A DNA stretch of 64,000 bases, from positions 372,001-436,000 of IMG/VR virus record IMGVR_UViG_3300028558_000016; one strand, 5' to 3'. Shown in pieces: positions 13,294-47,505 of this stretch (position 1 is its first letter; every line of letters starts with the position of its first letter). A program made the translations under genes and the position numbers. The notes beneath the pieces are model-generated. The model made no database searches. It saw only the letters and a program-made list of their open reading frames with translations, and had not been told where the DNA came from.

Positions 13294-14010
13294 ATGAAAA
13301 ACTTCGACGAATTCTCAAACAGCATAAGGATCAATGAATCCGAAATCAAATTCTTAAATGAAGATGAAACAGAGCTTAATCAGCTTGGAATAGAACTTAC
13401 CAATTACATGGAAGATCAAGGAATTAAGTTTCCTGCATTCGACATTAAAAATGGAGTTCTTACATTAGATATGGCTGGAGAAGAGATTCACATAAAACCA
13501 GAACGTCAGGAATATAGCACTGGACATGGAACTCATCCAGGTTACGTTGTTTCAATGAAGCACAATCCCGATGAAAAGGTTGAAGACATTTTTGGATGGT
13601 TAGCAAGACACGTTTCTGCGTACCAACACGGTGAAGGAGAATATCATCACGAGACTTGGGTTGAAAAAATGAGAGACAAATTTGCAAGTCAGGCTGGAAT
13701 GGATGAAGGAATAGGATTGCTTCCAGATGAAGGACCATTCAAAGGAAAAACACCTGCAGAAAGAGTAAAGAACTATGCCAAGACATTGAACAAGAATAAG
13801 GTTGACAGAAAGGATGCAGAAGATTTTAATACTCTTTTGGGAATGATTGCTAAAAAAGATTCTGCAGCACAGGATTTCTTTTGGAATTTAGACACTTCGG
13901 TTAGGGATACTTTTGCGTCCGCTTATATTAATAGAGCAGATGGTAAGATCCTTGATATGGATGCCAAGAAAGAACTTTCTTCTTTATTAAAAGTAAGTAT
14001 TTCAAAATAA
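13294..14010 (+). CDS. hypothetical protein (possible internal virion protein)
   Basis: MKNFDEF...INES...LNE; ATATATAG upstream. Confidence 0.6.
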   Translation: MKNFDEFSNSIRINESEIKFLNEDETELNQLGIELTNYMEDQGIKFPAFDIKNGVLTLDMAGEEIHIKPERQEYSTGHGTHPGYVVSMKHNPDEKVEDIFGWLARHVSAYQHGEGEYHHETWVEKMRDKFASQAGMDEGIGLLPDEGPFKGKTPAERVKNYAKTLNKNKVDRKDAEDFNTLLGMIAKKDSAAQDFFWNLDTSVRDTFASAYINRADGKILDMDAKKELSSLLKVSISK

Positions 14011-14080
14011 ATTTTTTAGTTTCAAATATAGTGCCTATATTTGCATTGTAAATAAAACTGAAACAAAGAAAGATATATAG
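14008..14080 (+). promoter_or_regulatory. conserved operon promoter block
   Basis: TTTTTTAGTTTCAAATATAGTGCCTATATTTG...GAAACAAA..GATATATA. Confidence 0.65.
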
Positions 14081-14186
14081 AATAGAAGTAGAGATTGTGA
14101 CGCTACCCTTTGACAAATGATTAAGTAGAGTACGGGGTTTAATCTGAAAAAGCAAACCAATCGAAACTTCAAACATAATAACGAAC

Positions 14187-14276
14187 ATGAGATTTAATAA
14201 TAATAATCAGCAACAGTATCAACAGAATAATTATTCTGGTTGCGTGTTATTATTTTCTCCTGTCTCTGTTGATTGA
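14187..14276 (+). CDS. attenuator leader peptide, Asn/Gln/Tyr-rich (29 aa)
   Basis: MRFNNNNQQQYQQNNYSGCVLLFSPVSVD*. Confidence 0.85.
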   Translation: MRFNNNNQQQYQQNNYSGCVLLFSPVSVD

Positions 14277-14337
14277 CAGTTAAGATTTTAAGAGAATAAC
14301 ACGCAACCCGAACCGAAACGTTCGGGTTTTTTATTTT
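14238..14337 (+). terminator. attenuator: antiterminator and intrinsic terminator
   Basis: GGTTGCGTGTTATT(14238-51)/AATAACACGCAACC(14295-308), 14 bp, overlaps terminator AACCCGAAC-CGAAAC-GTTCGGGTT-TTTT. Confidence 0.85.
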
Positions 14338-14354
14338 CAAAAAAATCAAAAGTC

Positions 14355-14591
14355 ATGAAAACACCTCAGTGGTATAAACGAAAAATCAAGGAGGTCAAGA
14401 AACAGAAAAGAGAATTGACCTCTACAGAAATAGGCACGTTCTTCAATGGAGTAACCCTCACTAACAAGAGGAGGAAAGAAATGAAGGAAGATCTTAAGAA
14501 AGAAAAAAGATCTTACAAGCGTGCAGAAAAACAGGATCTCAAAAAGTCTATAGACGAAGAGATCCAAGATTGGAAAAGGAAGAAGCATTAA
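14355..14591 (+). CDS. small basic hypothetical protein
   Basis: ORF track, K/R-rich. Confidence 0.6.
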   Translation: MKTPQWYKRKIKEVKKQKRELTSTEIGTFFNGVTLTNKRRKEMKEDLKKEKRSYKRAEKQDLKKSIDEEIQDWKRKKH

Positions 14592-14604
14592 GCTTCTTCC
14601 ACAA

Positions 14605-14691
14605 GGGTAAGTTGCCGTAGTGGCCGAACGGTCCAGACTGTTAATCTGGTGAGAGCAATCTCCGTCGTGGGTTCGAATCCCACCTCGCCCT
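14605..14691 (+). tRNA. tRNA-Asn(GTT), long variable arm
   Basis: CCAGA-CTGTTAA-TCTGG; variable arm GAGAGCAATCTC. Confidence 0.8.
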
Positions 14692-14698
14692 CAACTTT

Positions 14699-14771
14699 TG
14701 GAGATTAGCTCAGTTGGTAGAGCTGCTGGTTGTTAGCCAGATGGTCGCGGGTTCGATCCCTGCATCTCCAG
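14699..14771 (+). tRNA. tRNA-Asn(GTT)
   Basis: CTGG-TTGTTAG-CCAG; TGGAGAT/ATCTCCA; G73. Confidence 0.85.
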
Positions 14772-14776
14772 CAAAT

Positions 14777-14848
14777 GCGCAAATAGCTCAGCGGTAGAGC
14801 AACCGGCTGTTAACCGGTAGGTCGCAGGTTCGATCCCTGCTTTGCGCG
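14777..14848 (+). tRNA. tRNA-Asn(GTT)
   Basis: ACCGG-CTGTTAA-CCGGT; GCGCAAA/TTTGCGC; G73. Confidence 0.92.
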
Positions 14849-14862
14849 CAAAAATAAAAGTA

Positions 14863-15111
14863 ATGGAAACAAAAACATTTGGTGAATGGTTAGAATTTCT
14901 GCCATCAGAACAATATCAAAGATTATCTTATGACGATAAGATGATTGCAACTATGAAATTGTTATTTGAGAAGGGTGAAAGAAACCCAAGTGCAATCACA
15001 GCAAAACTGTGGTACTTGGGATTCAAGGAAGGAAGATTCACTGACATAAGAAAACTTGCTGAGCATCAATTCAAATTGTACTCACAAGCACAAGCAGAGA
15101 AAGTAAGATAA
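14863..15111 (+). CDS. hypothetical protein
   Basis: METKTFGEWL..., start moved downstream of the tRNA. Confidence 0.6.
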   Translation: METKTFGEWLEFLPSEQYQRLSYDDKMIATMKLLFEKGERNPSAITAKLWYLGFKEGRFTDIRKLAEHQFKLYSQAQAEKVR

Positions 15112-15115
15112 AAAT

Positions 15116-15188
15116 TGTCCTGTGGTGTAACTGGCAACACGTGTGATTTTGGCTCATAAGAGTGCAGGTTCGAGCCCTGCCGGGACAA
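15116..15188 (+). tRNA. tRNA-Gln(TTG)
   Basis: TGTGA-TTTTGGC-TCATA; TGTCCTG/CGGGACA. Confidence 0.88.
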
Positions 15189-15208
15189 CAGTTGAAATGG
15201 AAATATAT

Positions 15209-15292
15209 TGGGGATCGCCGGAGTTGGAGAGCCGGGACAGTCTGTAAAACTGTTGACTTCGGTCTGAGTGGGTTCGAATCCCATGTCCCCAA
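15209..15292 (+). tRNA. tRNA-Tyr(GTA)
   Basis: ACAGT-CTGTAAA-ACTGT; long variable arm. Confidence 0.88.
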
Positions 15293-15315
15293 CAGTTCTT
15301 TGAAAATAAATTTAT

Positions 15316-15430
15316 GGGGAAGTAGCTCAGTTGGCAGAGCAATAGAAAAAAGCGTATTCTGCCCAAGAATATTTACAGCAACACAAAAGTAAATCTGTGT
15401 GCGGCCGTTCGAATCGGTCCTTCCCCACCA
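15316..15430 (+). ncRNA. tRNA scaffold with a large insert replacing the anticodon loop
   Basis: GGGGAAG/CTTCCCC+ACCA, intact D and T arms; insert contains GTATTCTG...GAATATTTACAGCAA. Confidence 0.7.
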
Positions 15431-15431
15431 T

Positions 15432-15505
15432 GGGACATTCCATACTAATTGGTAAGTCACTCGGTTGTAACCCGAGAAATGGGGGTTCGAGTCCCTCATG
15501 TCCCA
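15432..15505 (+). tRNA. tRNA-Tyr(GTA), short variable loop
   Basis: CTCGG-TTGTAAC-CCGAG; GGGACAT/ATGTCCC; irregular D region. Confidence 0.75.
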
Positions 15506-15506
15506 C

Positions 15507-15590
15507 TGTACAGTATGCAAATTGGCGAAGCGAACAGATTTTGGATCTGTTGGAGTAATCCCGCTGCAGGTTCGAGCCCTGCCTGTATAA
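15507..15590 (+). tRNA. tRNA-Gln(TTG), long variable arm
   Basis: ACAGA-TTTTGGA-TCTGT; TGTACAG/CTGTATA. Confidence 0.78.
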
Positions 15591-15604
15591 CTAAAATTAA
15601 AAAC

Positions 15605-16669
15605 ATGGAACAATTTCCACATAACGAAGAAGTAGACTTTAATAAAAAGTTGAATGTAAAATTTGGAATAGATCCAACTGCAGATAGATTGCATTTGGGA
15701 CATTTGATACCTTTGCGATTTGCGAAGAAGATGTTAGACAATGGACATAACCTTGACATAGTGTTAGGAACGTTCACTGCGCAGCTTGGAGATCCTTCTG
15801 GAAAAGATTCAATGAGACCTATATTGGACTCTGAAACTACTAAAGACAATGCAATTGCATTATTGCCTATCATCAGAAGGATTTTAAAGAAAGATTTTAA
15901 TCTTCATTTCAATCATGAATGGTTCAAAAGAATGAATGCGATTGATATGATCAACATTCTTTCTAAGTTTACAGCAAATCAATTGTTGTCGAGAGACTCT
16001 TTTCAAAAAAGAATTTCAAATGAAGATGGAATTGGTATGCATGAATTAACTGTTCCTATTTTGCAAGGATTTGATTCTGTTCATTTGAAAACAGATCTCG
16101 AAATAGGAGGCAACGATCAATTGTTTAACTTTAAAATAACAAGAGATCTGCAAAGAGCATTTAATCAAAAGCCGGAGATTTGCATGTTGATGCCAATAAT
16201 CAATGGAACTGATGGGAGAAAAATGAGCAAGACGTTTAAGAATTGCATTTTTCTCGATGACAGTCCCGTAGATGTTTTTGGGAAAACGATGTCCATATCT
16301 GATGAGTTGATGAAAGAATGGTTCATGGTTTTTATGGATGAATCAATAGGTCATCCAATGGAAGCAAAGAAAAAACTCGCATTTCAAATAACAAAAGAAG
16401 TGTGGGACGAAGATAATGCTAAAATTGCATTGGAACATTTTGAAAGAGTAATACAAAAGAAGAATGTACCGGTAGAAATTAAGGACATTAAAGACACAGA
16501 TATTTTAAAAGTCATTATGGAATTACGTAAATGTTCTGCCACAGAAGCAAGAAGATTATTGTCGCAAGGAGCAGTTAAAGTCAATGATGAAAAAGCATTA
16601 GAAGAAAAGACCTTATCATCTGGAGACATTGTAAAGGTTGGTAAGCTGAACTTTGCTAAGATAATGTAA
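15605..16669 (+). CDS. tyrS: tyrosyl-tRNA synthetase
   Basis: GIDPTADRLHLGH, GGNDQLFN, KMSKT, C-terminal S4 domain. Confidence 0.95.
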   Translation: MEQFPHNEEVDFNKKLNVKFGIDPTADRLHLGHLIPLRFAKKMLDNGHNLDIVLGTFTAQLGDPSGKDSMRPILDSETTKDNAIALLPIIRRILKKDFNLHFNHEWFKRMNAIDMINILSKFTANQLLSRDSFQKRISNEDGIGMHELTVPILQGFDSVHLKTDLEIGGNDQLFNFKITRDLQRAFNQKPEICMLMPIINGTDGRKMSKTFKNCIFLDDSPVDVFGKTMSISDELMKEWFMVFMDESIGHPMEAKKKLAFQITKEVWDEDNAKIALEHFERVIQKKNVPVEIKDIKDTDILKVIMELRKCSATEARRLLSQGAVKVNDEKALEEKTLSSGDIVKVGKLNFAKIM

Positions 16670-16689
16670 AAAGAATTTTGTATATTTAC

Positions 16690-16762
16690 TGTCTCGTAGC
16701 GCAACTGGCAGAGCGCCTGATTCTGGATCAGGAGGTTGGAGGTTCGAGCCCTCCCGAGACAA
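16690..16762 (+). tRNA. tRNA-Gln(CTG)
   Basis: CCTGA-TTCTGGA-TCAGG; TGTCTCG/CGAGACA. Confidence 0.92.
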
Positions 16763-16781
16763 CAATTAAAACATAAATAAT

Positions 16782-18341
16782 ATGTCAAGAAAAGTAAGAG
16801 TAAGATTTGCCCCGTCACCGACAGGGCCACTTCACATGGGTGGCGTAAGAACCGCCTTGTATAATTATCTCTTTGCTAAAAAGCACGGAGGTGATTTCAT
16901 TTTAAGAATAGAAGATACAGACAAAGACAGATTTGTTCCTGGCGCAGAAGCTTACATCATTGAAGCTTTGAATTGGTGTGGAATAACTCCTAACGAAGGA
17001 ATAGATGGAAATTCTGTTCTTGATACATACAAGCAATCAAAAAGAAATGAGGCTGGAATATACAATCCTTATGTTGCAAAATTAATTGCAGAAGGAAATG
17101 CATATTACGCATTTGATACTAAAGAAGATCTTGACGCATTGAGAACTTCTGTTTCTGAAAAAAGAAAAGCAGGATTAAAAGTAAGAGAATTCGCTTATGG
17201 TGTTTTCACAAGAGAATTATTGAACAACAGCTTGAACATGACTGCCGATGAATTGAAAGCAAGATTGGATGCTGGAATTCCTTATGTCATTCGTTTGAAG
17301 ATGCCTAAGGAAGTTGAAATTAAATTCGTTGATTTGATCAGAGGTGCTGTCACTGTAAAAAGTCACACCATCGATGATAAGGTTATATTCAAGAGCGATG
17401 GACTTCCAACATACCATTTGGCAAATGTTGTTGACGATCACTTGATGGACATTTCTCACGTCATTAGAGGTGAGGAGTGGTTGCCATCGGCACCGTTGCA
17501 CGTCATGCTATACAAGATGTTAGGTTGGGAAGATACCATGCCTGAGTTTGCACACCTTCCTTTGATCATGGGACCAAGCGGTAAATTGAGCAAGAGAGAT
17601 GGAGATACATTGGGATTTCCTGTATATCCTTTAAAGTATACAGATCCAAAAACATCTGAGACATCGAGCGGTTACCGTGAGAATGGTTTCTTGCCAAGTG
17701 CATTCAATAACATGGTTGCATTTCTTGGTTGGAATCCAGGTGGCACCGATGAGGTATTCACAATGGATGAAATGATCGATAAATTCTCTTTGGATAGAGT
17801 AGGAAAATCAGGAGCTAAATTCGATTTGAAGAAGGCTAATTGGTTCAATCACCAACACATGATGAAGTCTGATAATGATGACTTGGCAAAATTATGGATC
17901 AGCAATGGAGGATTATACAATGGAGCCATGGGTGTTTGGTCTACTGATGCGACAAAACAACGTGTTGATTCATTTGAATATGTTTCAAAGGTTTGTGGAT
18001 TGCTTAAAGAGAAGGTTTCTAACATCAATGATTTTTGGAATTCTGGAAAATATTTCTTTATTGCGCCTGAGCCAAGTCTTGGAACAGAACATTCTTCGTT
18101 CTTGGCAGAAGTAATTGCAAACATAACTAAGGATGAAGTGTTCAATCACGATTCTTTAAGAGCTGTGTTTGATGCTTCAGTTAAGGCAACCGGTGTTGAC
18201 GCAAGAGAGGCTGGAATGGTTTTAAGGATTGCTGTAACAGGAATGAAAGTTGGTCCACCTTTATTTGATGCAATGGAATTGATAGGTAAAAATGAATCAA
18301 TAAACAGAATAGCATCTAACGTGGTAGTCAATCATGAGTAA
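16782..18341 (+). CDS. gltX: glutamyl-tRNA synthetase
   Basis: RFAPSPTGPLHMGG, RIEDTD, HVIRGEEW, KLSKR. Confidence 0.96.
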   Translation: MSRKVRVRFAPSPTGPLHMGGVRTALYNYLFAKKHGGDFILRIEDTDKDRFVPGAEAYIIEALNWCGITPNEGIDGNSVLDTYKQSKRNEAGIYNPYVAKLIAEGNAYYAFDTKEDLDALRTSVSEKRKAGLKVREFAYGVFTRELLNNSLNMTADELKARLDAGIPYVIRLKMPKEVEIKFVDLIRGAVTVKSHTIDDKVIFKSDGLPTYHLANVVDDHLMDISHVIRGEEWLPSAPLHVMLYKMLGWEDTMPEFAHLPLIMGPSGKLSKRDGDTLGFPVYPLKYTDPKTSETSSGYRENGFLPSAFNNMVAFLGWNPGGTDEVFTMDEMIDKFSLDRVGKSGAKFDLKKANWFNHQHMMKSDNDDLAKLWISNGGLYNGAMGVWSTDATKQRVDSFEYVSKVCGLLKEKVSNINDFWNSGKYFFIAPEPSLGTEHSSFLAEVIANITKDEVFNHDSLRAVFDASVKATGVDAREAGMVLRIAVTGMKVGPPLFDAMELIGKNESINRIASNVVVNHE

Positions 18342-19398
18342 TATGCCAATAGGAATCCAAGCAATGGGTCCAGCCGAAGTAATAACGGAAATGTTTCTTC
18401 GTCCTGGATCCATTTCTGCTTATAGAGAGCAGATGGATCTGCTTGATAAAAACAAGGAACATATTTCTGTTCACGATGGATTTTCTATAATAACTTTCTG
18501 GGAACCTGCAACGAAGGCTTTCAATGCCGGCTGGAAGATGAGAGTTGTTTATGGCGAAGTAAAAGAAAAGAAATATTTTGTAAAAGATAATTGGAAAAAC
18601 AAAACAGTTTATTCTGGTGCAAGGCCTGAATGCGAAAAATACGTTCAGGGAAATAACACATATCAATTAAATTATTCTCGTTTGACAATCGAAATTAATT
18701 CAACTCTCGATGATAAGTTGGATGAATTAAAAAAGATTATTTCTGACTCAACAAAGCCAGATGAGAACGAATTGCGTTTTGCAAAGGCTACATCTAATTG
18801 GATCAAGGGTCCTGTCATGGGTTGGTTGAATGATAACAAGCTTGATTTCACCACTCGTTCTAAACCATCTCATCATAAATCATTAGTCACTGGAAATCTT
18901 TTCGACTATGAAAAATATTCTGCCATTGATGAAGAGAAGTGGTGGCCTAAAGATTCTCCTGATGCAAAACTTTATTTGCCTCTTCCTAAAGACGAATATC
19001 CTTACACAGTCGTGTATTCTGAAGAGGAGAGTAATTTTCCAATAAAATCTGAACATTTAAAAGAATTAATAAGCTTGGTTGAATTTACAGATCTTATTAG
19101 TTTCTCTACTGCTTCCAAAACTGTTTTTCCTGAGATGATCAAAAATCCAGATGAAAAACCTTGGGATATAATTCAAAGATTAAATTTGATGCAAAGCAAT
19201 GATGATGATGCCATCAAACAAATGGCCAAAGATGCTTTAGCAAAATATCCCGACAAGGTTGAAGAATATAGGAAAGGAAAGAAGGGAGTTCTCAGCCTGT
19301 TCATGGGCGAAGTAATGAAAGCCGGTAAAGGAAAAGTAAATCCGCAAATGGCTTCAGAAATAGTAAAAAATCTTTTGGAAGAAAAGGAGGGAGCATAA
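18334..19398 (+). CDS. protein with C-terminal GatB/YqeY domain
   Basis: VEEYRKGKKGVLSLFMGEVMKAGKGKVNP. Confidence 0.8.
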   Translation: MSNMPIGIQAMGPAEVITEMFLRPGSISAYREQMDLLDKNKEHISVHDGFSIITFWEPATKAFNAGWKMRVVYGEVKEKKYFVKDNWKNKTVYSGARPECEKYVQGNNTYQLNYSRLTIEINSTLDDKLDELKKIISDSTKPDENELRFAKATSNWIKGPVMGWLNDNKLDFTTRSKPSHHKSLVTGNLFDYEKYSAIDEEKWWPKDSPDAKLYLPLPKDEYPYTVVYSEEESNFPIKSEHLKELISLVEFTDLISFSTASKTVFPEMIKNPDEKPWDIIQRLNLMQSNDDDAIKQMAKDALAKYPDKVEEYRKGKKGVLSLFMGEVMKAGKGKVNPQMASEIVKNLLEEKEGA

Positions 19399-19413
19399 CT
19401 GCTCCCACTTTCT
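19386..19413. terminator. hairpin between convergent genes
   Basis: GGGAGCA-TAAC-TGCTCCC followed by T-rich tail. Confidence 0.5.
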
Positions 19414-19601
19414 TATTTAACTGTAGATGTTGCAACAACTGTAGGAGTTGCAATCACTGAAGCAGCTTCAACTGCTTTACAAGTATCAACACACGCTTTC
19501 GTTGTGTCACAAACTTCATTAACAACTTCAACTTCCGTTTTAGGAGTTCCACATGCAGCAAACATCGTCGTTGCAATAATTAAAAGTACAATCTTTTTCA
19601 T
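19413..19601 (-). CDS. small lipoprotein
   Basis: MKKIVLLIIATTMFAAC lipobox. Confidence 0.7.
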   Translation of the reverse strand: MKKIVLLIIATTMFAACGTPKTEVEVVNEVCDTTKACVDTCKAVEAASVIATPTVVATSTVK

Positions 19602-19716
19602 AGATTTTGTTGGGTTTTTAGTTTAGTTCCATATTAAACCGGGTCACGGTCAGGCTATATATAAATCACTGAGAAGTTAGTTTCAATCGATATATACAGC
19701 ACCACAATCATTTCCA

Positions 19717-19914
19717 TTGAAGCCAAAATTTAAAATCGGACAAACCATTTATTACATGTATCTCAATTGGATATGCAAATCTAAAGTGAAAAATCATTAT
19801 GAAAAAGATGGGAAGATCTTTTATTCTGATGACAGAAATGATGAAATATTAGAAAAATTCGTATTTGATAATAAGCCCGAACTGATTGATTTTCATATAA
19901 ATAGAACAAAATAA
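19717..19914 (+). CDS. hypothetical protein
   Basis: ORF track (KFKIGQ start). Confidence 0.55.
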   Translation: MKPKFKIGQTIYYMYLNWICKSKVKNHYEKDGKIFYSDDRNDEILEKFVFDNKPELIDFHINRTK

Positions 19915-19919
19915 ATAAA

Positions 19920-19960
19920 TAATTTTTCTGGTTTAAAAATAAGTGCCTATATTTGTATTC
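19920..19960 (+). promoter_or_regulatory. conserved operon promoter block
   Basis: TTTTTCTGGTTTAAAAATAAGTGCCTATATTTG. Confidence 0.6.
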
Positions 19961-19978
19961 AAGTTGAAAATCTTTAAG

Positions 19979-20032
19979 GGTTGCATTCAGCATAACAAAT
20001 CATCTACAAAATGAAACCAAAAGCAATCTGAA
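19979..20032 (+). ncRNA. CAGCA-motif structured element, copy A
   Basis: GGTTGC-ATTCAGCATAACAAA...GCAATC-TGAA. Confidence 0.55.
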
Positions 20033-20087
20033 GAATTTCAATGAAACAAAAAAGAAAAAAGATATATAACATAAGATATTAAAAAAA

Positions 20088-20142
20088 GGATGCGTTCAGC
20101 ATAACAAACTTACAATTGAAAAGTAAACCAAGGCATCCTGAA
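20088..20142 (+). ncRNA. CAGCA-motif structured element, copy B
   Basis: GGATGC-GTTCAGCATAACAAA...GCATCC-TGAA. Confidence 0.55.
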
Positions 20143-20155
20143 AAATTTTAAAGAA

Positions 20156-20248
20156 ATGAAAAAAGTAAATAACATAATCCCGCAGTTTCAGTTTGTGGTG
20201 CCGTTTAGCGGTTCCAACGGGCGTGTTATGTACTTTGACGATTTGTAA
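20156..20248 (+). CDS. attenuator leader peptide, Pro/Phe/Val-rich (30 aa)
   Basis: MKKVNNIIPQFQFVVPFSGSNGRVMYFDDL*. Confidence 0.8.
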   Translation: MKKVNNIIPQFQFVVPFSGSNGRVMYFDDL

Positions 20249-20298
20249 AAGAAAACGTTAGACAACAGAAAGCCCGGTGGAAACATCGGGCTTTTTTT
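20218..20298 (+). terminator. attenuator: antiterminator and intrinsic terminator
   Basis: CGGGC(20218-22) can pair GCCCG in the 5' arm of AAAGCCCGGTG-GAAA-CATCGGGCTTT-TTTT. Confidence 0.8.
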
Positions 20299-20311
20299 AT
20301 TTGCAAAATTT

Positions 20312-20384
20312 CGGGGTGTAGCGCAGTTGGTAGCGCGCGTGGTTTGGGGCCATGAGGTCGTCGGTTCGAGCCCGGCTACCCCGA
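20312..20384 (+). tRNA. tRNA-Pro(TGG)
   Basis: CGTGG-TTTGGGG-CCATG; CGGGGTG/TACCCCG. Confidence 0.9.
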
Positions 20385-20511
20385 CAGAAAAAGTCCTGTG
20401 ATTGACAAGAGTGTGTAAACCTTACAGGAAACGCACGGCTCCGCAGAGGAGTTAGAACTGGAATTGAGGGATACCAGATTGTTGATCGAATGGAAAATTG
20501 TTCTTTGAAAT

Positions 20512-20585
20512 GTGGGAGTAGCTGAGTTGGTTCAAGCGCCAGACTGAAAATCTGGAGTAGATCGGTTCGAGACCGATGTCTCACA
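20512..20585 (+). tRNA. tRNA-Phe(GAA)
   Basis: CCAGA-CTGAAAA-TCTGG. Confidence 0.88.
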
Positions 20586-20633
20586 CGAGTTTTGTTTTTC
20601 CAAGGTTTTGTTTTTCACAAATCAAAACCACCA

Positions 20634-20706
20634 CGAGGTGTGGCGAAGTTGGTATCGCGCCTGGTTTGGGACCAGGAGATCGCAGGTTCGAGCCCTGTCA
20701 CCTCGA
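20634..20706 (+). tRNA. tRNA-Pro(TGG)
   Basis: CCTGG-TTTGGGA-CCAGG; CGAGGTG/CACCTCG. Confidence 0.92.
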
Positions 20707-20717
20707 CAAATGGAAAT

Positions 20718-20790
20718 GTGGATGTAGCTCAGTTGGTAGAGCACTGCCCTGAAGAGGCAGGTGTCGGGGGTTCGAATCCCTCCATCCACA
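20718..20790 (+). tRNA. tRNA-Phe(GAA)
   Basis: CTGCC-CTGAAGA-GGCAG; GTGGATG/CATCCAC. Confidence 0.92.
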
Positions 20791-20796
20791 CGGCGC

Positions 20797-21030: not shown

Positions 21031-21055
21031 CAAAAAACTTTTCCTATTTTAAAAT

Positions 21056-21130
21056 TGACGCATAGCTCAGTTGGTTCAGAGCATCTGCCTTACAAGCAGA
21101 GGGTCGGGGGTTCGAATCCCTCTGCGTCAA
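21056..21130 (+). tRNA. tRNA-Val(TAC)
   Basis: TCTGC-CTTACAA-GCAGA. Confidence 0.92.
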
Positions 21131-21131
21131 C

Positions 21132-41551: not shown

Positions 41552-41631
41552 TAAATTTTTTAGTTTCAGAAATAGTTCCTATATTTGCAGATATAAACAT
41601 TGAAACAATTTTAAAAAGAAAAGGTATATAG
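41552..41631 (+). promoter_or_regulatory. conserved operon promoter block
   Basis: TTTTTTAGTTTCAGAAATAGTTCCTATATTTG...GAAACAA...GGTATATAG. Confidence 0.65.
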
Positions 41632-41638
41632 TTTAGAA

Positions 41639-41745
41639 GATTGCTTACAGCAAAACAAAATGGTTAAAGAATCACCGAAAGGTGGTTTTTTCGGTTCGAT
41701 CCCGAAGCTCTGAGATTACATCAATGAGTTTTAAGGCAATCTGAA
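41639..41745 (+). ncRNA. CAGCA-motif element enclosing a tRNA-like core, copy C
   Basis: GATTGC-TTACAGCAAAACAAA...TGGTTAAAG...GGTTCGATCCC...GCAATC-TGAA. Confidence 0.55.
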
Positions 41746-41766
41746 AGACATTAGAATAACAATACA

Positions 41767-41850
41767 ATGAAGAACAGGAATCACATACACAAGCATCAGA
41801 TATGGCATAGAGATATGTCGGGCTTGGGTGTTACCTGTACTTTGAAGTAA
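41767..41850 (+). CDS. attenuator leader peptide, His/Trp (27 aa)
   Basis: MKNRNHIHKHQIWHRDMSGLGVTCTLK*. Confidence 0.85.
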   Translation: MKNRNHIHKHQIWHRDMSGLGVTCTLK

Positions 41851-41906
41851 GTATTGGTTATTTACGAAAGTAAAACCTCAAGGCCTAAAACCTTGAGGTT
41901 TTTTTT
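41823..41906 (+). terminator. attenuator: antiterminator and intrinsic terminator
   Basis: CTTGGGTGTT can pair AACCTCAAG; terminator AAAACCTCAAGG-CCTAAAA-CCTTGAGGTTTT-TTTT. Confidence 0.82.
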
Positions 41907-41914
41907 ATTTACAT

Positions 41915-41997
41915 ACGTCGGTGTCCGAGCGGTCAAAGGTAGCGGTCTCCAAAACCGCGGAGTTTCTCCATCGTGGGTTCGAATCCTACCCGGCGTG
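41915..41997 (+). tRNA. tRNA-Trp(CCA), long variable arm
   Basis: GCGGT-CTCCAAA-ACCGC; G73; GGAGTTTCTCC arm. Confidence 0.88.
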
Positions 41998-42018
41998 CAA
42001 AAATTAAAAGAAGAAAAC

Positions 42019-42363
42019 ATGAATGCAACAGATGTGAAGAAAGAGCTTTACAAAAGCAAAGTGACAGCAAAGTTAACAGACATTGTTAATGGAACAATGT
42101 TTTATTCTGTTCAATTGGAAGATGGCTTATATCGTTTCCCAATAGTTCAGGTGAAAGAAGTTGGTGGACCATTATACAGGCTTGAGGCAAAAACACAAAC
42201 AAGCCCAACAGTTTCTTTGACGTACACGAAACTCGAAGAGAAATGTTATTCACTTTCTTCTGATCTCGGAAGCACTCCTTTCTATCCTGAAATGAAAGCT
42301 TCTGAATTAAACAGGTGGATTGAAAAGGCAATAAAGGATGGAGAGTTTGTGAAGTTGTATTAA
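42019..42363 (+). CDS. hypothetical protein
   Basis: MNATDVKKELYKSK..., start placed after the tRNA. Confidence 0.65.
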   Translation: MNATDVKKELYKSKVTAKLTDIVNGTMFYSVQLEDGLYRFPIVQVKEVGGPLYRLEAKTQTSPTVSLTYTKLEEKCYSLSSDLGSTPFYPEMKASELNRWIEKAIKDGEFVKLY

Positions 42364-42373
42364 TGGAAATTAT

Positions 42374-42463
42374 GGTGCAGGTATCCAAGGGGTTGAAGGG
42401 ACCAGGCTGTGGACCTGGTTGAAGCGAAAGCTGAACACGCGAGTTCGAATCTCGTCTTGCACC
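42374..42463 (+). tRNA. tRNA-His(GTG), long variable arm
   Basis: G-1:C73; CCAGG-CTGTGGA-CCTGG; AGCGAAAGCT arm. Confidence 0.85.
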
Positions 42464-42468
42464 CACAT

Positions 42469-42543
42469 GTGGATTGTAGCTCAATGGTAGAGCGCTGGTT
42501 TGTGGAACCAGATATGCGGGTTCGATCCCCGTCTTTCCAACCA
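42469..42543 (+). tRNA. tRNA-His(GTG)
   Basis: CTGGT-TTGTGGA-ACCAG; G-1, A73; two U.U mismatches in the acceptor stem. Confidence 0.8.
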
Positions 42544-42552
42544 AAAGAAGCA

Positions 42553-43185
42553 ATGATGAAAGAGTTAAAGTTAGATAGCACGTACAAAGGAACGAGAATT
42601 CTTGTAGGAAACGAGAAGCGTGGAATGATCAATGACATGGTCATGATTTTATTGAATCAAGGCTTCACTGAGATTTCCATTCCGATCATTCAGTTGCAAG
42701 AAACATTTGCAGGAAAGGTTGGAGAAGAAAATAACAATCTAATGTTCAATTTTAAAGATCGTGGAGAAAGGAATGTTTGCTTGGCTCCTGAATACACAGC
42801 AGTGATTCAACAATTGGCAAAGACGAAATACAAACAAGAAAAGGACGTAAAGCTTTTCTATGTGCAAGAATGTTTTAGAGGAGAAAAGCCTCAAGCAGGA
42901 AGATACAGACAGTTTACTCAATTTGGAGTTGAAATTTTAAATCCAAAGAAAGAAACTATGGAAGGATTAAAAGAATTAGCCGTCAGCCTTTTGTCCGGTT
43001 ATGATTTCAAATTCAACGTCAACAGTGATGTGACGAGAGGTTTGGATTATTACAAGGACGGAAAAGGATTTGAGATCACATGCGATGAGCTTGGATCAAG
43101 CAAACAGATTTGTGGTGGAGGTTCTTATGAAGGTGGAATGGGTTTTGCAATTGGAATTGATAGGATATTAAAAACACAGTCATGA
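42553..43185 (+). CDS. hisS: minimal histidyl-tRNA synthetase (catalytic core only)
   Basis: LAPEYTA, FRGEKPQAGRYRQFTQFGVE, RGLDYY, GGGSY, GFAIGIDRI. Confidence 0.9.
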   Translation: MMKELKLDSTYKGTRILVGNEKRGMINDMVMILLNQGFTEISIPIIQLQETFAGKVGEENNNLMFNFKDRGERNVCLAPEYTAVIQQLAKTKYKQEKDVKLFYVQECFRGEKPQAGRYRQFTQFGVEILNPKKETMEGLKELAVSLLSGYDFKFNVNSDVTRGLDYYKDGKGFEITCDELGSSKQICGGGSYEGGMGFAIGIDRILKTQS

Positions 43186-43913
43186 AATATTTAGTAGGAA
43201 TACAGCCAACAGGAAAGATCCATATTGGAAACTATATGGGTTGCTTAGCAAAGGGGTTGAGATACCAGGAGCAGGGACACGAAGTAACGTTTCTCATTGC
43301 CAACTATCACAGCATGACGACAGACTCATACTCTGATGTGACTGAGAAGGAATTGAGAATGCTTGGATGCAAGAACATTGTGCACCAGACTCCGGCTTAC
43401 ACTGAATTGTTCTTCAAGCTTTGTTGCAAGATGAACCTTGGAGTTTTGCAGAAGATGCCTCAGTACAAGGATAAAAAGGAAAGTGTTGATTTCGATATGG
43501 GGATTCTTTTATATCCAGTTCTAATGGCAGCAGACATCATCATGAATGATCCTGATGTTGTGTTGGTTGGAAGAGACCAGGTTCCACACATGGAATTGAC
43601 GAACGATATTGCAAAAAGAGTTGGAGTAACAAAGAGGTTTGAATACGAGCTTGGGGATGTTGAAAAGGTGATGTCGTTAATTGATCCAACAATGAAGATG
43701 TCAAAGTCATCTGGCGAAGCTCACGTGCTTTACCTATTTGACGAGGATTACAGTAACAAATTGAAAAGAGCAAACATGAACGGAGAAGGACTCATTAATA
43801 TACAAAAGATAGGAGACTTCTTTGGAATAGAAAGAAACGATATGAATTCCATATACAAAGAAAATATAGCAATAAAACTGTCATCGGTGTTCGGCACCGT
43901 CCCGGTGACTTAA
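43182..43913 (+). CDS. trpS: compact tryptophanyl-tRNA synthetase
   Basis: GIQPTGKIHIGNY, YPVLMAADI, VGRDQ, KMSKS. Confidence 0.93.
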   Translation: MKYLVGIQPTGKIHIGNYMGCLAKGLRYQEQGHEVTFLIANYHSMTTDSYSDVTEKELRMLGCKNIVHQTPAYTELFFKLCCKMNLGVLQKMPQYKDKKESVDFDMGILLYPVLMAADIIMNDPDVVLVGRDQVPHMELTNDIAKRVGVTKRFEYELGDVEKVMSLIDPTMKMSKSSGEAHVLYLFDEDYSNKLKRANMNGEGLINIQKIGDFFGIERNDMNSIYKENIAIKLSSVFGTVPVT

Positions 43914-43935: not shown

Positions 43936-44020
43936 GGGCGTGTACCGGTGGAATCTTATACATTCTATACCCGTAGTCTGGTCGTTGAAAACGGGGGTTC
44001 AAATCCCTCCACGCCTACCA
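43936..44020 (+). ncRNA. D-arm-less rearranged tRNA-like RNA, anticodon TAT (Ile)
   Basis: GGGCGTG/CACGCCT+ACCA; GGAAT-CTTATAC-ATTCT directly after the acceptor strand. Confidence 0.6.
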
Positions 44021-45115: not shown

Positions 45116-45190
45116 TAAATTTTTTAGTTTCAAATATAATACCTATATTTGTAAAAGATTAAGAAACAAAGAAAACCGCAAGGTATATAA
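45116..45190 (+). promoter_or_regulatory. conserved operon promoter block
   Basis: TTTTTTAGTTTCAAATATAATACCTATATTTG...GAAACAAA...GGTATATAAG. Confidence 0.65.
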
Positions 45191-45197: not shown

Positions 45198-45281
45198 ATG
45201 ATGAATACAGTAAATATTACCCGAATTATTAGGATTAGACGCAGATCAGCGACTCGCCTGGGTAGTATTATTTTATCATGA
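45198..45281 (+). CDS. attenuator leader peptide, Ile/Arg-rich (27 aa)
   Basis: MMNTVNITRIIRIRRRSATRLGSIILS*. Confidence 0.85.
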   Translation: MMNTVNITRIIRIRRRSATRLGSIILS

Positions 45282-45345
45282 AAGTTTTAAGGATTTAGAA
45301 AACTATGAATGGAATAAGCCCAGGACGAAAGTTCTGGGCTTTTTT
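45257..45345 (+). terminator. attenuator: antiterminator and intrinsic terminator
   Basis: CCTGGGT(45257-63) can pair GCCCAGG(45318-24) of AAGCCCAGGAC-GAAA-GTTCTGGGCTT-TTTT. Confidence 0.85.
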
Positions 45346-45395
45346 CATTTTAAAAATATCGAAAATGAAATGGTTTAAGAAATTACAGGAAATAA

Positions 45396-45479
45396 CGGCA
45401 CGTACTCAGACCATCCTGATAAGATGGATAACTTGTAGCGGTGTTGCAAACGTGGGTTCAAATCCCTCCGTGCCGACCA
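45396..45479 (+). ncRNA. D-arm-less rearranged tRNA-like RNA, anticodon GAT (Ile)
   Basis: CGGCACG/CGTGCCG+ACCA; CCATC-CTGATAA-GATGG 8 nt after the acceptor strand. Confidence 0.65.
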
Positions 45480-45760
45480 TGAAAAATATGTTGTATAAAA
45501 CCGCAAGAAGGTCGTTGTCAAAAAAGACAAACAGACATTTGAGACAAACCACGTTTCTCTACGAGATGTGTGGAAATGATTTTCAAAAGCTGTTAAAGGT
45601 GGAAGAGAGATTGAAAAATTATTTTCTCTTTTATTGTCCAGGCGATCCTGAAGAAGTGGAAAAAGTTTTGGCATTGCCTGAAAAATTTTTATTGAACGAT
45701 AAGAAGTGGCAAGATGGATCAAAATATTTTTGCTTAGAAGAATTTTACGACGGAATGTAG
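45479..45760 (+). CDS. hypothetical protein
   Basis: MKNMLYKT...; stop TAG lies inside the next tRNA. Confidence 0.55.
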   Translation: MKNMLYKTARRSLSKKTNRHLRQTTFLYEMCGNDFQKLLKVEERLKNYFLFYCPGDPEEVEKVLALPEKFLLNDKKWQDGSKYFCLEEFYDGM

Positions 45761-45824
45761 CTCAGTTGGTTAGAGCACCCGCCTGATACGCGGTAGGTCG
45801 GCAGTTCGAATCTGCCCATTCCGA
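45751..45824 (+). tRNA. tRNA-Ile(GAT)
   Basis: CCGC-CTGATAC-GCGG; CGGAATG/CATTCCG. Confidence 0.9.
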
Positions 45825-45827
45825 CAG

Positions 45828-45973
45828 ATGTCCTTAGCTCAGTGGTTAGAGTATTATGCTGATAAAAGGTTTTAGATCTTGTAATGGAAAAATATCACGG
45901 CTCATAACCGTGGTACCAAAACAAAAATTTAAAATGCACATAAGGGTCGGTGGTTCGAATCCATCAGGACATG
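45828..45973 (+). tRNA. tRNA (GAT) with about 73-nt insert carrying a nested CAT anticodon arm
   Basis: ATGTCCT/AGGACAT; TTATG-CTGATA[insert with CACGG-CTCATAA-CCGTG]A-CATAA. Confidence 0.65.
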
Positions 45974-45982
45974 CATAAAAAT

Positions 45983-46056
45983 GCCCGCGTAGCTCAACTG
46001 GATAGAGCACCTGACTACGGATCAGGAGGTTTAGAGTTCGAATCTCTACGTGGGTA
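45983..46056 (+). tRNA. tRNA-Arg(ACG)
   Basis: CCTGA-CTACGGA-TCAGG. Confidence 0.92.
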
Positions 46057-46060
46057 CATT

Positions 46061-46134
46061 GGTTTTGTAGCTCAATTGGATAGAGCAATTCCGTCCTAAG
46101 GAAAAGGTTATAGGTTCGAGTCCTATCAAGATCA
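46061..46134 (+). tRNA. tRNA-Arg(CCT)
   Basis: TTCC-GTCCTAA-GGAA. Confidence 0.85.
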
Positions 46135-46139
46135 CAAAT

Positions 46140-46212
46140 GCCTGCGTAGCTCAGTGGACAGAGCGCCGGTCTTCGGAACCGGGCGTCGGGAGTTCGAATC
46201 TCTCCGTGGGTA
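46140..46212 (+). tRNA. tRNA-Arg(TCG)
   Basis: CCGGT-CTTCGGA-ACCGG. Confidence 0.9.
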
Positions 46213-46236
46213 CTGAAGTAAAATGGAATTAAATAT

Positions 46237-46326
46237 GCCCGTGTAGCCGAGGAAGTTTTCTAAACTTTTATCCGTAATTGGAGCTGCGTCTCACGACTAA
46301 TGGGGGTTCGAATCCCTCCACGGGTA
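46237..46326 (+). ncRNA. D-arm-less rearranged tRNA-like RNA, anticodon TCT (Arg)
   Basis: GCCCGTG/CACGGGT; GAAGT-TTTCTAA-ACTTT right after the acceptor strand. Confidence 0.62.
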
Positions 46327-46341
46327 CTTAAAATTAAAGTT

Positions 46342-47505
46342 ATGAAAATTGATATTGATAAAATAAAACAGATCCCCAAAGAGATTTCGGAAGAATTTGG
46401 GATGTGCGTCTATGGACCAATCTCAGATGAGATTAAGGCATGGATGGAATTCCATGGTATGCAATCGCAAAACATGGGAAATTATACAAACATCTATACA
46501 GATAAAAACATTATTGATCTGTTCAATAAACCAGAACCATTTGAATACATCGATGGGTTCAGTCCAAACCTAAACAAGAATCTTCACATTGGACACTTCT
46601 CAAATTTAGTTCTTGCAAAGGCTTTCGTCTCTCTTGGAATAGCAAAGAAGACTGTGGCAATATTGGGAGACACGTTAGAAGGGGATGTTTCAAAGGAAGA
46701 TGCGTTGAACAACTACAATGAGATATGTGAGAAATTCTCATACCCCGTAGATAAGATGTTCATGGCTTCTGAAATGGAATCTGATTACAACCTCGTGGAT
46801 GGTGTTCATGAATATGAAGGAACCAAAGTGTTCTATCTTGATACGCCATTAGTTGGAATCAAAAGCGATGGGTCAACAACATATTTCTATCAGGACGTTG
46901 CATTGGCACAAAAATTAAATGCTCCAACATTATATCTTACAGGAAGCGAACAGAACGGACATTTCAACAGCTTAAAGGAAATGTTTCCTAAAATAAAGCA
47001 CATTGGACTTGGACTTGTAAAAGCAAAAGGAGGAAAGATGTCAAGCAGACTCGGAAATGTTATTTGGATGCAAGATGTCATCGATGAAATGATGAGCAAC
47101 TTTCAAGACGAAAAAGTGTGCTATAATGTTTTTGCAGGATTTATTTTGAAATCAACTCCTAAGTCTGAAAAGAACATAGACATATATCAATTGGACAATC
47201 CATTGAATTCACCTGGATTGTACTTAAGCTATACGTTAGCAAAACTAAAAAGCGCTGGAGTGAAATGTGAAGGAAAAACATTCACCTCTCAAGATCTTCA
47301 ATTCAAATACATGAAGGCCTTGAACTCTCTTTCTCCAAATATTTTGCTTGAAGGTTTAATTGATCATGCAAAGAAGATAAGCGGTTTATACATCACTCAC
47401 AAGATAAAAGATAATGCGGTGAACCAGTCCATGTTTGAAATATTGGGTTCAGATTTATTATTAGGAATGAGCCTCCTGGGTTTATTTGATGTTGACAAGG
47501 TTTAA
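46342..47505 (+). CDS. argS: compact arginyl-tRNA synthetase
   Basis: FSPNLNKNLHIGH, KSDGSTTYFYQDVA, EQNGHF, KMSSRLGN, YLSYTLAK. Confidence 0.9.
   Translation: MKIDIDKIKQIPKEISEEFGMCVYGPISDEIKAWMEFHGMQSQNMGNYTNIYTDKNIIDLFNKPEPFEYIDGFSPNLNKNLHIGHFSNLVLAKAFVSLGIAKKTVAILGDTLEGDVSKEDALNNYNEICEKFSYPVDKMFMASEMESDYNLVDGVHEYEGTKVFYLDTPLVGIKSDGSTTYFYQDVALAQKLNAPTLYLTGSEQNGHFNSLKEMFPKIKHIGLGLVKAKGGKMSSRLGNVIWMQDVIDEMMSNFQDEKVCYNVFAGFILKSTPKSEKNIDIYQLDNPLNSPGLYLSYTLAKLKSAGVKCEGKTFTSQDLQFKYMKALNSLSPNILLEGLIDHAKKISGLYITHKIKDNAVNQSMFEILGSDLLLGMSLLGLFDVDKV

Follow-up and report, generated by a model that had tools for sequence, protein, structure and literature searches.

The 64-kb stretch of DNA analysed here (the window) is part of a 482-kb phage genome, IMG/VR contig 3300028558_000016. 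Four sites of the window, all on the + strand, share one architecture: a Bacteroidota-type promoter, a conserved 5'-UTR box, an ORF of 27-30 codons, a strong intrinsic terminator, and then tRNA genes with matching aminoacyl-tRNA synthetases.

Modules of the window

In module 1, the promoter block and UTR box span 14010-14079, with a -7 element TATATTTG at 14036-14043 and the box GAAACAA..AAGATATATA at 14060-14079. Leader ORF 1 (14187-14276) has 29 codons and a TGA stop, and its codons 4-16 are all Asn, Gln or Tyr (AAT x6, CAG x3, CAA x2, TAT x2; control run N4 Q3 Y Q2 N2 Y). A segment inside this ORF (14234-14252, termed here region 2) pairs with 14291-14312, which overlaps the 5' arm of the intrinsic terminator (14305-14336; 9-bp stem at 14305-14328, followed by a T-tract). 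The cargo (14605-19398) comprises tRNA-Asn x3, tRNA-Gln(ttg) x2, tRNA-Tyr, TyrRS (15449-16669), tRNA-Gln(ctg), a bacterial-type GluRS (16782-18341), and a GatB/YqeY-domain protein (18334-19398).

In module 2, the stretch 19920-20068 comprises a promoter block with the core CCTATATTTG (19946-19955), one copy of an inserted structured element, and the UTR box (20043-20068). Leader ORF 2 (20156-20248; 30 codons and TAA) carries the run P-Q-F-Q-F-V-V-P-F, its Pro, Phe and Val codons being concentrated at codons 9-17 (CCG x2, TTT x4, GTG x2, GTA and GTT in the whole ORF). This leader is the weakest match to its cargo (10 of 29 codons), and non-cognate codons such as CAG are interspersed. Its region 2 (20212-20222) pairs with the 5' arm of the terminator (20267-20303; stem of 13 bp at 20267-20296, T-tract), and tRNA-Pro starts at 20312. 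The cargo (20312-25266) includes tRNA-Pro x2, tRNA-Phe x2, tRNA-Val(tac) x2, ProRS (21695-22852), a 2OG-Fe(II) oxygenase (22865-23404), a metallophosphoesterase (23401-24045), an RNA ligase (24042-24665), and tRNA-Val(gac). That the distal genes belong to the same transcript is inferred only from strand and the absence of strong terminators.

In module 3 (promoter block and UTR box 41553-41630, at 41557-41587 and 41602-41630, respectively), leader ORF 3 (41767-41850; 27 codons and TAA) displays the run H-I-H-K-H-Q-I-W-H, with CAC x2, CAT x2 and TGG within codons 6-14. Region 2 (41820-41832) pairs with 11 of 12 bases of the 5' arm of the terminator (41872-41910; 12-bp stem at 41872-41902, T8). 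The cargo (41915-43913) begins with tRNA-Trp at 41915, followed by tRNA-His x2, a truncated HisRS-like gene (42409-43185), and a truncated TrpRS-like gene (43182-43913).

Module 4 possesses a promoter block and UTR box at 45117-45189 (45121-45151 and 45163-45189), the latter ending 9 nt before the leader ATG. Leader ORF 4 (45198-45281; 27 codons and TGA) carries the run I-T-R-I-I-R-I-R-R-R, with ATT x6 and six Arg codons of four kinds (CGA, AGG, AGA x2, CGC x2). Region 2 (45254-45263) pairs with 10 of 11 bases of the 5' arm of the terminator (45316-45347; 11-bp stem at 45316-45341, T-tract). The cargo (45751-47505) comprises tRNA-Ile(gat), tRNA-Arg(acg), tRNA-Arg(cct), tRNA-Arg(tcg), and an ArgRS-like gene (46300-47505). 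A tRNA-Arg(tct), which reads the AGA codons of the leader, lies further down the same strand (50545-50619).

The promoter core CCTATATTTG occurs on the + strand exactly four times in 64 kb, only at these sites; a longer block matches three of them, against 0 expected by chance. The second conserved box, GAAACAA..AAGRTATATA, is also found only at the four sites (0.01 expected). In three window leaders, an extra structured element of unknown role separates this box from the ATG. The four hairpins are the strongest + strand terminator-like sites between 13 and 53 kb. A detector using only a terminator, a short ORF and a downstream tRNA returns exactly these four sites in the window. Not all phage tRNAs are gated, however: solitary tRNAs of the window (Cys 1929, CTA-suppressor 2278, Val-gac 25192, Arg-tct 50545, and Met 52987) have no leader of their own.

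Further copies in the genome and in related phages

Two further copies lie outside the window in the same genome. The fifth leader is a strict Leu/Ser alternation using TTG, TTA, CTA, TCA, TCG, TCC and AGT, and precedes 4 tRNA-Leu and 4 tRNA-Ser (together with anticodons caa, taa, tag, tga, cga, gga and gct), as well as a LeuRS-like gene. For the sixth, an A-D-C-A-D-E leader, the cargo was predicted before the downstream DNA was retrieved, and Asp, Ala, Cys and Glu tRNAs as well as AlaRS-like and AspRS genes were indeed found; the Thr run at the start of this leader, however, has no Thr tRNA in its cargo. Together, the six modules split 16 amino acids without overlap. The true leader-to-cargo assignment is the single best of 720 permutations (56 decodable codons, against 47 for the next best and a mean of 19.7), and 25 of 28 distinct cargo anticodons have a readable codon in their own leader.

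Beyond this genome, a composition-blind detector revealed 14 more leaders in other large-phage contigs, with other amino-acid combinations that again match their cargo. Across 20 non-redundant leaders from at least 13 phage contigs, the leader/cargo pairing scores 64.7, against 17.6 +/- 5.0 for permutations (maximum 42.1 in 50,000; z 9.5). Cognate residues make up 51% of the first 60% of the ORFs and 21% of the rest. The P/F/V leader, the A/D/C/E leader and the two leaders labelled L218 are individually weak on whole-ORF composition, and only about a third of multi-tRNA clusters in related contigs have a detectable leader directly upstream. In many relatives, a conserved A/T-rich box sits 8-25 nt before the leader ATG, and a TAnnTTTG element 43-62 nt before it. 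In 14 of 20 cases, the first tRNA starts 8-28 nt after the terminator stem, which leaves no room for a separate promoter, so that it can only be expressed by read-through.

Alternative pairing of the leader RNAs

In all 17 leaders folded (three of the 20, found later, were not folded), a distal ORF segment pairs with the terminator 5' arm when the control codons are masked. Own-arm complementarity sums to -207, against -138 +/- 9 for swaps (minimum -182 in 20,000), and the own arm ranks first in 9 of 17, including leaders 2 and 4. Against shuffled sequences, the z-score ranges from -2.5 to -6.1 for the five copies of this genome that were shuffled (-6.1, -3.5, -2.5 and -3.9 for leaders 1 to 4, respectively). 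At equilibrium, however, the full-length RNA prefers the terminator in three of the four window leaders even with the control codons masked, and the switch must therefore be kinetic. A trp-style 1:2 anti-antiterminator helix is barely supported (p about 0.05), so the translating ribosome itself probably plays that role.

Homologous loci at 92%, 62% and 56% ArgRS identity keep the control codons, while region 2, the 5' arm and the 3' arm change together, for example CCTGGG/CCCAGG/CTGGG against TCCGGG/CCCGGA/TCCGGG.

A proposed attenuation mechanism

The sequence-only reading had proposed that codon-matched leader-peptide attenuators gate the tRNA/aaRS modules. All four architectures are confirmed, and every computational refutation test named in that reading came out in favor of this core reading. 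In the absence of expression, Ribo-seq or Term-seq data, the modules are best explained, with good confidence, as ribosome-mediated transcription attenuators. Host RNA polymerase would start at the Bacteroidota-type promoter and a ribosome on the short leader ORF. When charged tRNA for the control codons is sufficient, the ribosome would run through region 2 (codons about 17-22) to the stop codon; region 2 then cannot pair, the terminator hairpin forms, and transcription stops a few bases before the first tRNA gene. When any cognate charged tRNA is scarce, the ribosome would stall on the control codons, leaving region 2 free to pair with the terminator 5' arm as that arm emerges, and the polymerase would read into the tRNA genes, the matching synthetases and, in some modules, RNA-repair genes. 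As these products are the very tRNAs and charging enzymes that relieve the stall, each module would be a negative-feedback "tRNA homeostat" for its own two to four amino acids. Translation of the leaders, stalling, the kinetic competition and the feedback are inferred.

The depletion of tRNAs may result from host anticodon nucleases, phage-induced host shut-off, or a mismatch between phage codon demand and host supply. The sequence-only reading favored an inducible counter-defence or starvation response, which remains an inference. In the counter-defence version, compatible with the above mechanism, tRNA-depleting defences such as anticodon nucleases cut particular tRNAs, the matching leader stalls, and only the needed replacement module (tRNA, synthetase and RNA repair) is induced. 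The RNA ligase, metallophosphoesterase and 2OG-Fe(II) oxygenase genes of module 2 (22865-24665), the RNA ligase and Sir2 of the Leu/Ser module, and the SmpB gene following AspRS in the sixth module are only suggestive in this respect. T4 Pnkp/Rnl1 probably repair tRNA cut by PrrC, and phage tRNAs seem able to rescue infection from tRNA-targeting defences. However, no defence system or host is identified, a plain supply/demand homeostat explains the same anatomy without any defence, and the coverage of 16 amino acids looks more like general provisioning than a response to one nuclease. This trigger is possible but tentative.

Other explanations appear unlikely. Short ATG-ORFs are common in 36% GC DNA and some individual leaders are not significant on their own, so the hairpins could be ordinary, partly leaky terminators insulating the tRNA operons from upstream transcription, with the ORFs as untranslated by-products of AT-rich sequence. 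Yet the terminators lie downstream of the conserved promoter and not upstream of it, and the codon-to-cargo matching, the complementarity of each distal segment to its own terminator arm, and the conservation of control codons in diverged relatives disfavor this view. Direct, T-box-like sensing of uncharged tRNA, or binding of a phage or host protein without translation, would follow the same logic as a T-box, and an unexplained structured element sits in three of the 5' UTRs, but this view is equally doubtful. No T-box or any other Rfam cis-regulatory family matches, even at E <= 5, in the one stretch scanned that permissively (13990-20320, leaders 1 and 2), and at gathering thresholds the whole window gives only tRNA hits. 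Furthermore, up to 13 consecutive cognate codons lie in one frame, opened by ATG and closed by a stop in every case, several amino acids are sensed per leader, which a single specifier cannot do, and T-boxes do not appear to be known in Bacteroidota. Least likely, the ORFs might encode functional micro-proteins, such as synthetase or nuclease modulators, with a codon bias reflecting peptide function. The peptides are conserved at 92% relatedness, but at 56-62% only the control residues and the RNA pairing potential persist; the C-terminal peptide sequence is not conserved, and composition tracks the cargo tRNAs in each module.

Comparison with known systems

The mechanism itself is known, but its use on tRNA genes, for which no description could be found, appears new. 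The classical attenuators of amino-acid biosynthetic operons (trpL, hisL, leuL, thrL, ilvL, pheL) also combine a short ORF with clustered regulatory codons, an intrinsic terminator before the first structural gene, an antiterminator sharing the terminator 5' arm, and a read-out of charged-tRNA availability through ribosome position. Multi-amino-acid leaders are already known among them (thr: Thr/Ile; ilv: Ile/Leu/Val). Here, the element is encoded by a virus, the cargo is tRNA genes and synthetases instead of biosynthetic enzymes, so the output is the sensed molecule itself, six or more modules partition the amino acids, and region 2 lies inside the ORF, well before the stop codon. As a 1:2 helix is not clearly present, absence of translation may give read-through rather than super-attenuation.

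The nearest precedent for the cargo is probably the pheM-pheST attenuator of E. coli, a leader peptide with cognate codons controlling a terminator in front of the phenylalanyl-tRNA synthetase operon. It appears to involve one amino acid, a cellular gene and no tRNA genes behind the terminator, whereas in the phage modules tRNAs come first and synthetases follow. T-box riboswitches also regulate aaRS genes by terminator read-through according to the charging state of the cognate tRNA, but bind the tRNA directly through a specifier codon and the T-box sequence, without translation; each phage leader reports on several amino acids and isoacceptors. Like phages with tRNA and tRNA-repair counter-measures (T4 tRNAs with Pnkp/Rnl1 against PrrC) or rich in tRNAs, such as T5, this phage carries its own tRNAs and RNA ligase/phosphoesterase genes, plausibly to keep translation going when host tRNAs fail. 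No sensing circuit seems to be known in those other phages, while expression here appears conditional and specific to each amino-acid group. In drug-sensing leader peptides (ermC, cat, and attenuators of mef/msr type), ribosome stalling on a short upstream ORF also remodels downstream RNA structure, but there the stall depends on a drug and the peptide sequence, and here on which codons are present.

Architecture of the tRNA modules

The window contains 25 tRNA genes as detected by ARAGORN, most of them in four + strand clusters at 14.6, 20.3, 41.9 and 45.8 kb. Upstream of each cluster, the same order of parts is found four times: an upstream gene ends, a conserved A/T-rich block follows that ends in CCTATATTTG, then a second conserved box reading GAAACAA..AAGRTATATA, a short ATG-ORF, a G+C-rich hairpin followed by a T-tract, and finally the tRNAs. 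The ORFs lie at 14187-14276, 20156-20248, 41767-41850 and 45198-45281 and have 29, 30, 27 and 27 codons, respectively. The core CCTATATTTG occurs on the + strand exactly four times in 64 kb, only at these sites, and a 31-nt version of the block matches three of them, with none expected by chance. The second box also occurs only at these four sites. The four hairpins, with energies of -12.8 to -19.7 kcal/mol and each followed by a T-tract, are the four best + strand terminator-like sites between 13 and 53 kb.

In three of the four leaders, an extra element of 70-135 nt sits between the conserved UTR box and the leader ATG, the second leader having two copies of it (14080-14186, 19956-20042, 20069-20155 and 41631-41766). 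This element has a closing helix (AGATTGC...GCAATCT, with the compensatory variants GGTTGC/GCAATC and GGATGC/GCATCC), then GAA, and an internal TTCAGCATAACAAA motif. The copy at 41.6 kb folds well (z -3.7), and no Rfam family matches the element. In modules 1 and 4, small ORFs without any family match lie between the terminator and the first tRNA (14346-14591 and 45365-45760), the first of which encodes an 81-aa, very basic protein.

Pfam and NCBIfam profiles identify the protein cargo as it had been named in the sequence-only reading. TyrRS, a bacterial-type GluRS, ProRS and a GatB C-terminal/YqeY domain protein are clear. In contrast, several of the phage synthetases are strongly truncated or divergent and fall below the curated NCBIfam cut-offs. 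These are the HisRS-like (42409-43185, 258 aa), TrpRS-like (43182-43913, 243 aa) and ArgRS-like (46300-47505, 401 aa) proteins of the window, together with the LeuRS-like (487 aa) and AlaRS-like (263 aa) proteins of two modules lying outside it.

Two further modules in the same genome

The window belongs to contig IMGVR_UViG_3300028558_000016, which is 482,156 bp long, and an independent ENA assembly of 482,059 bp exists. A PHROGs scan of the large ORFs of the window gave no hallmark structural genes, and the phage identity rests on the IMG/VR assignment, the gene content and these two independent 482-kb assemblies. The promoter pattern hits two further places in this genome. At the first, locus L002, an ORF at 8307-8378 has codons 5-16 in a strict Leu/Ser alternation (TTG, TCA, TTA, AGT, CTA, AGT, TTG, TCG, CTA, TCC, TTA, TCA). 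It is followed by a terminator (8408-8429) and, 11 nt after the T-tract, by tRNA-Leu(tag), Ser(gga), Ser(tga), Ser(gct), Leu(taa), Leu(caa), later Ser(cga) and Leu(gag), and the LeuRS-like gene (9085-10548). Seven of the eight downstream anticodons therefore have a cognate codon in the leader.

At the second, locus L183/L261, the leader contains the run A-D-C-A-D-E. Before the downstream DNA was fetched, it was predicted to hold Thr, Ala and Asp, and perhaps Cys and Glu. It holds tRNA-Asp, Cys, Asp, Glu, Ala, Glu, Glu, the AlaRS-like gene (L261 11925-12716), tRNA-Ala, Glu, a non-discriminating-type AspRS and SmpB. The prediction of a tRNA-Thr failed, which leaves the Thr-rich N-terminus of this leader unexplained. 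Thr-rich N-termini recur in other leaders and may serve initiation rather than control.

The six modules cover N/Q/Y, P/F/V, H/W, I/R, L/S and A/C/D/E, which is 16 amino acids without overlap. No seventh module for Gly, Lys, Met or Thr was found with this promoter, although one of the scans was incomplete. When the leader codons readable by the downstream anticodons under standard wobble rules are counted, the true assignment scores 56, the best of all 720 assignments, against a mean of 19.7 and 47 for the next best.

Leaders in related phages

The ArgRS-like protein has hundreds of homologues. Its form of roughly 390 aa is widespread in large phages and also occurs in Ignavibacteriales and Bacteroidota MAGs. 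Searches of IMG/VR with single proteins for close relatives of TyrRS and ArgRS found only the source contig, and the nearest GenBank phages, the huge phages LR756501 and LR756504, are not informative, as they match only the GluRS gene weakly and carry no tRNAs within 12 kb of it. Genomic context was collected for some of the ArgRS-like homologues and for about 115 loci retrieved by an alignment query. These were examined with a detector that knows nothing about composition and asks for a hairpin of at most -8 kcal/mol with a T-tract, an ATG-ORF of 12-45 codons ending within 75 nt upstream, and a tRNA within 600 nt downstream.

In the window, this detector returns exactly the four leaders and nothing else. 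Elsewhere, it returns H/W and I/R leaders in a 92% relative (L270) and a 62% relative (L022), and I/R leaders in the loci L024 (47% GC) and L069. New combinations are also found: a T/R/H leader before tRNA-His, Arg, Arg, Thr; a Q leader before tRNA-Gln; a Y/E leader before Tyr x2 and Glu x4; a Q/K leader before Gln and Lys; an S/W/R leader before Ser, Trp, Trp, Ser, Ser, Arg, Arg; N/L/V/T/C/I leaders before arrays of 15-19 tRNAs; and V/Y/E and N/I/D/W leaders in locus L218. The ORFs have 22-36 codons, with ATG and stop, in all 20 non-redundant leaders. Over these 20, the summed binomial enrichment for the leaders' own cargo is 64.7, while permuted pairings give 17.6 +/- 5.0, with a maximum of 42.1 in 50,000 (z = 9.5). 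The test is conservative, because several leaders share I/R cargo. Some leaders, however, are not significant alone (P/F/V, A/C/D/E, those of loci L059 and L082, and the two in L218). Cognate residues fill 51% of the first 60% of the ORFs and 21% of the rest. About a third of the multi-tRNA clusters with upstream sequence available (8 of 25) have such a leader directly in front, against 1 of 35 solitary tRNAs, these prevalence figures being rough since the survey was seeded from one gene family.

The ArgRS-like homologues of Ignavibacteriales and Bacteroidota MAGs show no adjacent tRNAs or leaders, and no cellular counterpart was thus found in this narrow test. Of note, contig L267 (JAVTWD010000016.1, 375 kb), labelled as a Bacteroidota MAG, carries the ArgRS-like gene next to an array of 13 tRNAs and is probably a large phage genome binned with a bacterial MAG.

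Alternative RNA pairings

Each transcript was folded from the ATG up to the terminator loop, that is before the 3' arm exists. In the five copies of this genome folded in this way, the 5' arm of the terminator pairs with a segment at about nt 50-70 of the leader (region 2), inside the ORF and just after the control codons. Against dinucleotide shuffles of the intervening sequence, the energies of these five copies have z = -2.5 to -6.1. With the control codons masked to mimic a stalled ribosome, the pairing holds for all 17 leaders folded. As terminator sequences differ between leaders, it was asked whether the distal 48 nt of each ORF prefer their own arm. The summed duplex energy is -207, against -138 +/- 9 for swapped arms (minimum -182 in 20,000), and the own arm ranks first in 9 of 17 and within the top two in 12. 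In the I/R family, the change CCCAGG to CCCGGA in the 5' arm is accompanied by CCTGGG to TCCGGG in region 2 and by CTGGG to TCCGGG in the 3' arm, and the H/W family shows the analogous three-way change, although column-wise counts are limited by indels and by having only three or four sequences.

Some points speak against a textbook trp-type switch. In full-length RNA, the terminator is the equilibrium structure for three of the four window leaders even with masking, and control must therefore be kinetic. Furthermore, a trp-like 1:2 helix between the control codons and region 2 is not convincingly supported, being only marginally better than chance (z -0.8 to -2.7 per leader; cross-leader permutation p about 0.047). 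Region 2 lies inside the ORF and the stop codon follows it by 15-40 nt, so that an unstalled ribosome must run over region 2 and then sit between regions 2 and 3. We take the ribosome itself to be what prevents antitermination. This implies, by inference, that failure to translate the leader at all would give read-through, a fail-open design.

Position of the terminators and probable host

The promoter precedes the terminator, and the first tRNA begins 8-28 nt after the terminator stem in 14 of 20 cases. In the window, the first tRNAs at 20312 and 41915 follow terminators ending at 20303 and 41910, respectively. That leaves no room for another promoter, so these tRNAs can be made only by read-through. 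In relatives, a promoter-like TAnnTTTG element lies 43-62 nt (or more, with inserts) before the leader ATG, and an A/T-rich (G)ATATATAA box lies 8-25 nt before it. TAnnTTTG appears to correspond to the Bacteroidota -7 consensus. The same promoter pattern drives ordinary genes in other Bacteroidota-type phages: the hits in other IMG/VR contigs (loci L005-L015 and most of L144-L260) are ordinary Bacteroidota-type promoters before protein genes, with no leaders. The promoter is therefore generic, and what is special is what follows it. Together with the ArgRS-like homologues in Ignavibacteriales and Bacteroidota MAGs, this suggests that the host is probably in that group and that host RNA polymerase probably reads these operons.

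Possible function and relation to known systems

Going beyond the anatomy, the codon matching, the alternative pairing and their conservation, we infer, without experimental data, that charged cognate tRNA sets the speed of the ribosome on the leader and that the module's own products relieve the stall, giving homeostatic control of each tRNA group. The trigger could be host tRNA cleavage by defence nucleases, host shut-off, or the codon demand of the phage itself. RNA-repair and ribosome-rescue-type genes lie in or near the gated operons (22865-24665 in the window; L002 10475-12303; L261 5830-7866 and 14883-15305), namely a 2OG-Fe(II) oxygenase, a metallophosphoesterase, two RNA ligases (PF09414), Sir2, a Thg1-like protein, NUDIX and SmpB. 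The P/F/V operon continues into the oxygenase, the metallophosphoesterase and an RNA ligase, the L/S module holds an RNA ligase and a Sir2 protein, and the A/C/D/E module ends with SmpB, which speaks for a damage-response component. Co-transcription of these genes is only inferred, however, and the coverage of 16 amino acids looks like general provisioning. A wider reading remains tentative: large phages of Bacteroidota-like hosts may carry a modular, self-regulating translation back-up system, in which every module senses, codon by codon and isoacceptor by isoacceptor, whether the infected cell can still decode a small set of amino acids, and on failure switches on the matching phage tRNAs, synthetases and RNA-repair enzymes. 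It would thereby act as an inducible counter-measure to tRNA-cleaving host defences and to host shut-off, with built-in negative feedback and the fail-open design.

With its short ORF between promoter and regulated genes, its cluster of cognate codons, its Rho-independent terminator and its mutually exclusive antiterminator, the predicted mechanism belongs with the ribosome-mediated (leader-peptide) transcription attenuators. A T-box riboswitch, with its stem I, specifier loop and conserved T-box sequence in the antiterminator bulge, is not supported, as the Rfam 15 scan gave only tRNA hits at gathering thresholds over the whole window, and a permissive scan (E <= 5), covering 13990-20320 only, gave no T-box hit. 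In these scans, no match was found either to the known Rfam leader families (His, Trp, Leu, Thr and similar leaders). The nearest precedent for the cargo appears to be pheM-pheST. No description of an attenuator in front of tRNA genes, in phages or in cells, was found in the literature searched, which is incomplete. The mechanism is an old one, while the class of cargo (the sensed molecule itself), the viral carrier and the modular layout appear new.

Phage tRNA genes have mostly been treated as constitutive codon-usage patches or as decoys against tRNA-targeting defences. A sensing circuit in front of them would show that large phages measure the decoding capacity of the host and dose their own tRNAs and synthetases accordingly, and it would add tRNA genes to what leader-peptide attenuation can control, giving a direct product-feedback loop on tRNA pools. 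It would also explain why tRNAs and cognate synthetases are grouped in these genomes, and would supply a natural set of at least 20 compact, orthogonal, codon-specific sensors usable as reporters of individual tRNA pools. What phage tRNAs are for would become testable, since the trigger of each leader can be read out directly.

Unusual tRNAs

Some tRNAs have a long, stem-forming variable arm (84-93 nt, class II shape) but carry anticodons of Asn, Gln, Trp, His, Glu, Val, Thr, Met, Arg or Cys. They are found in the window at 14605-14692, 15507-15591, 41915-41998 and 42375-42464, at 11753-11839 of L261, and in the phage loci L022, L034, L117, L218 and others. They make up 24 of 242 distinct tRNAs in the fetched phage loci and usually sit beside a normal-length tRNA with the same anticodon. 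Rfam finds additional tRNA matches that ARAGORN does not call, at 15316-15427, 15434-15503, 43936-44017, 45828-45973 and 46237-46326, and also at about 2000-2275. Some of these are 110-146 nt long, and may therefore contain introns or be degenerate. Finally, a tRNA with anticodon CTA at 2278-2351 (amber suppressor; labelled Pyl by ARAGORN) suggests that TAG may be read as sense in part of this genome, all six leaders of which stop at TGA or TAA.
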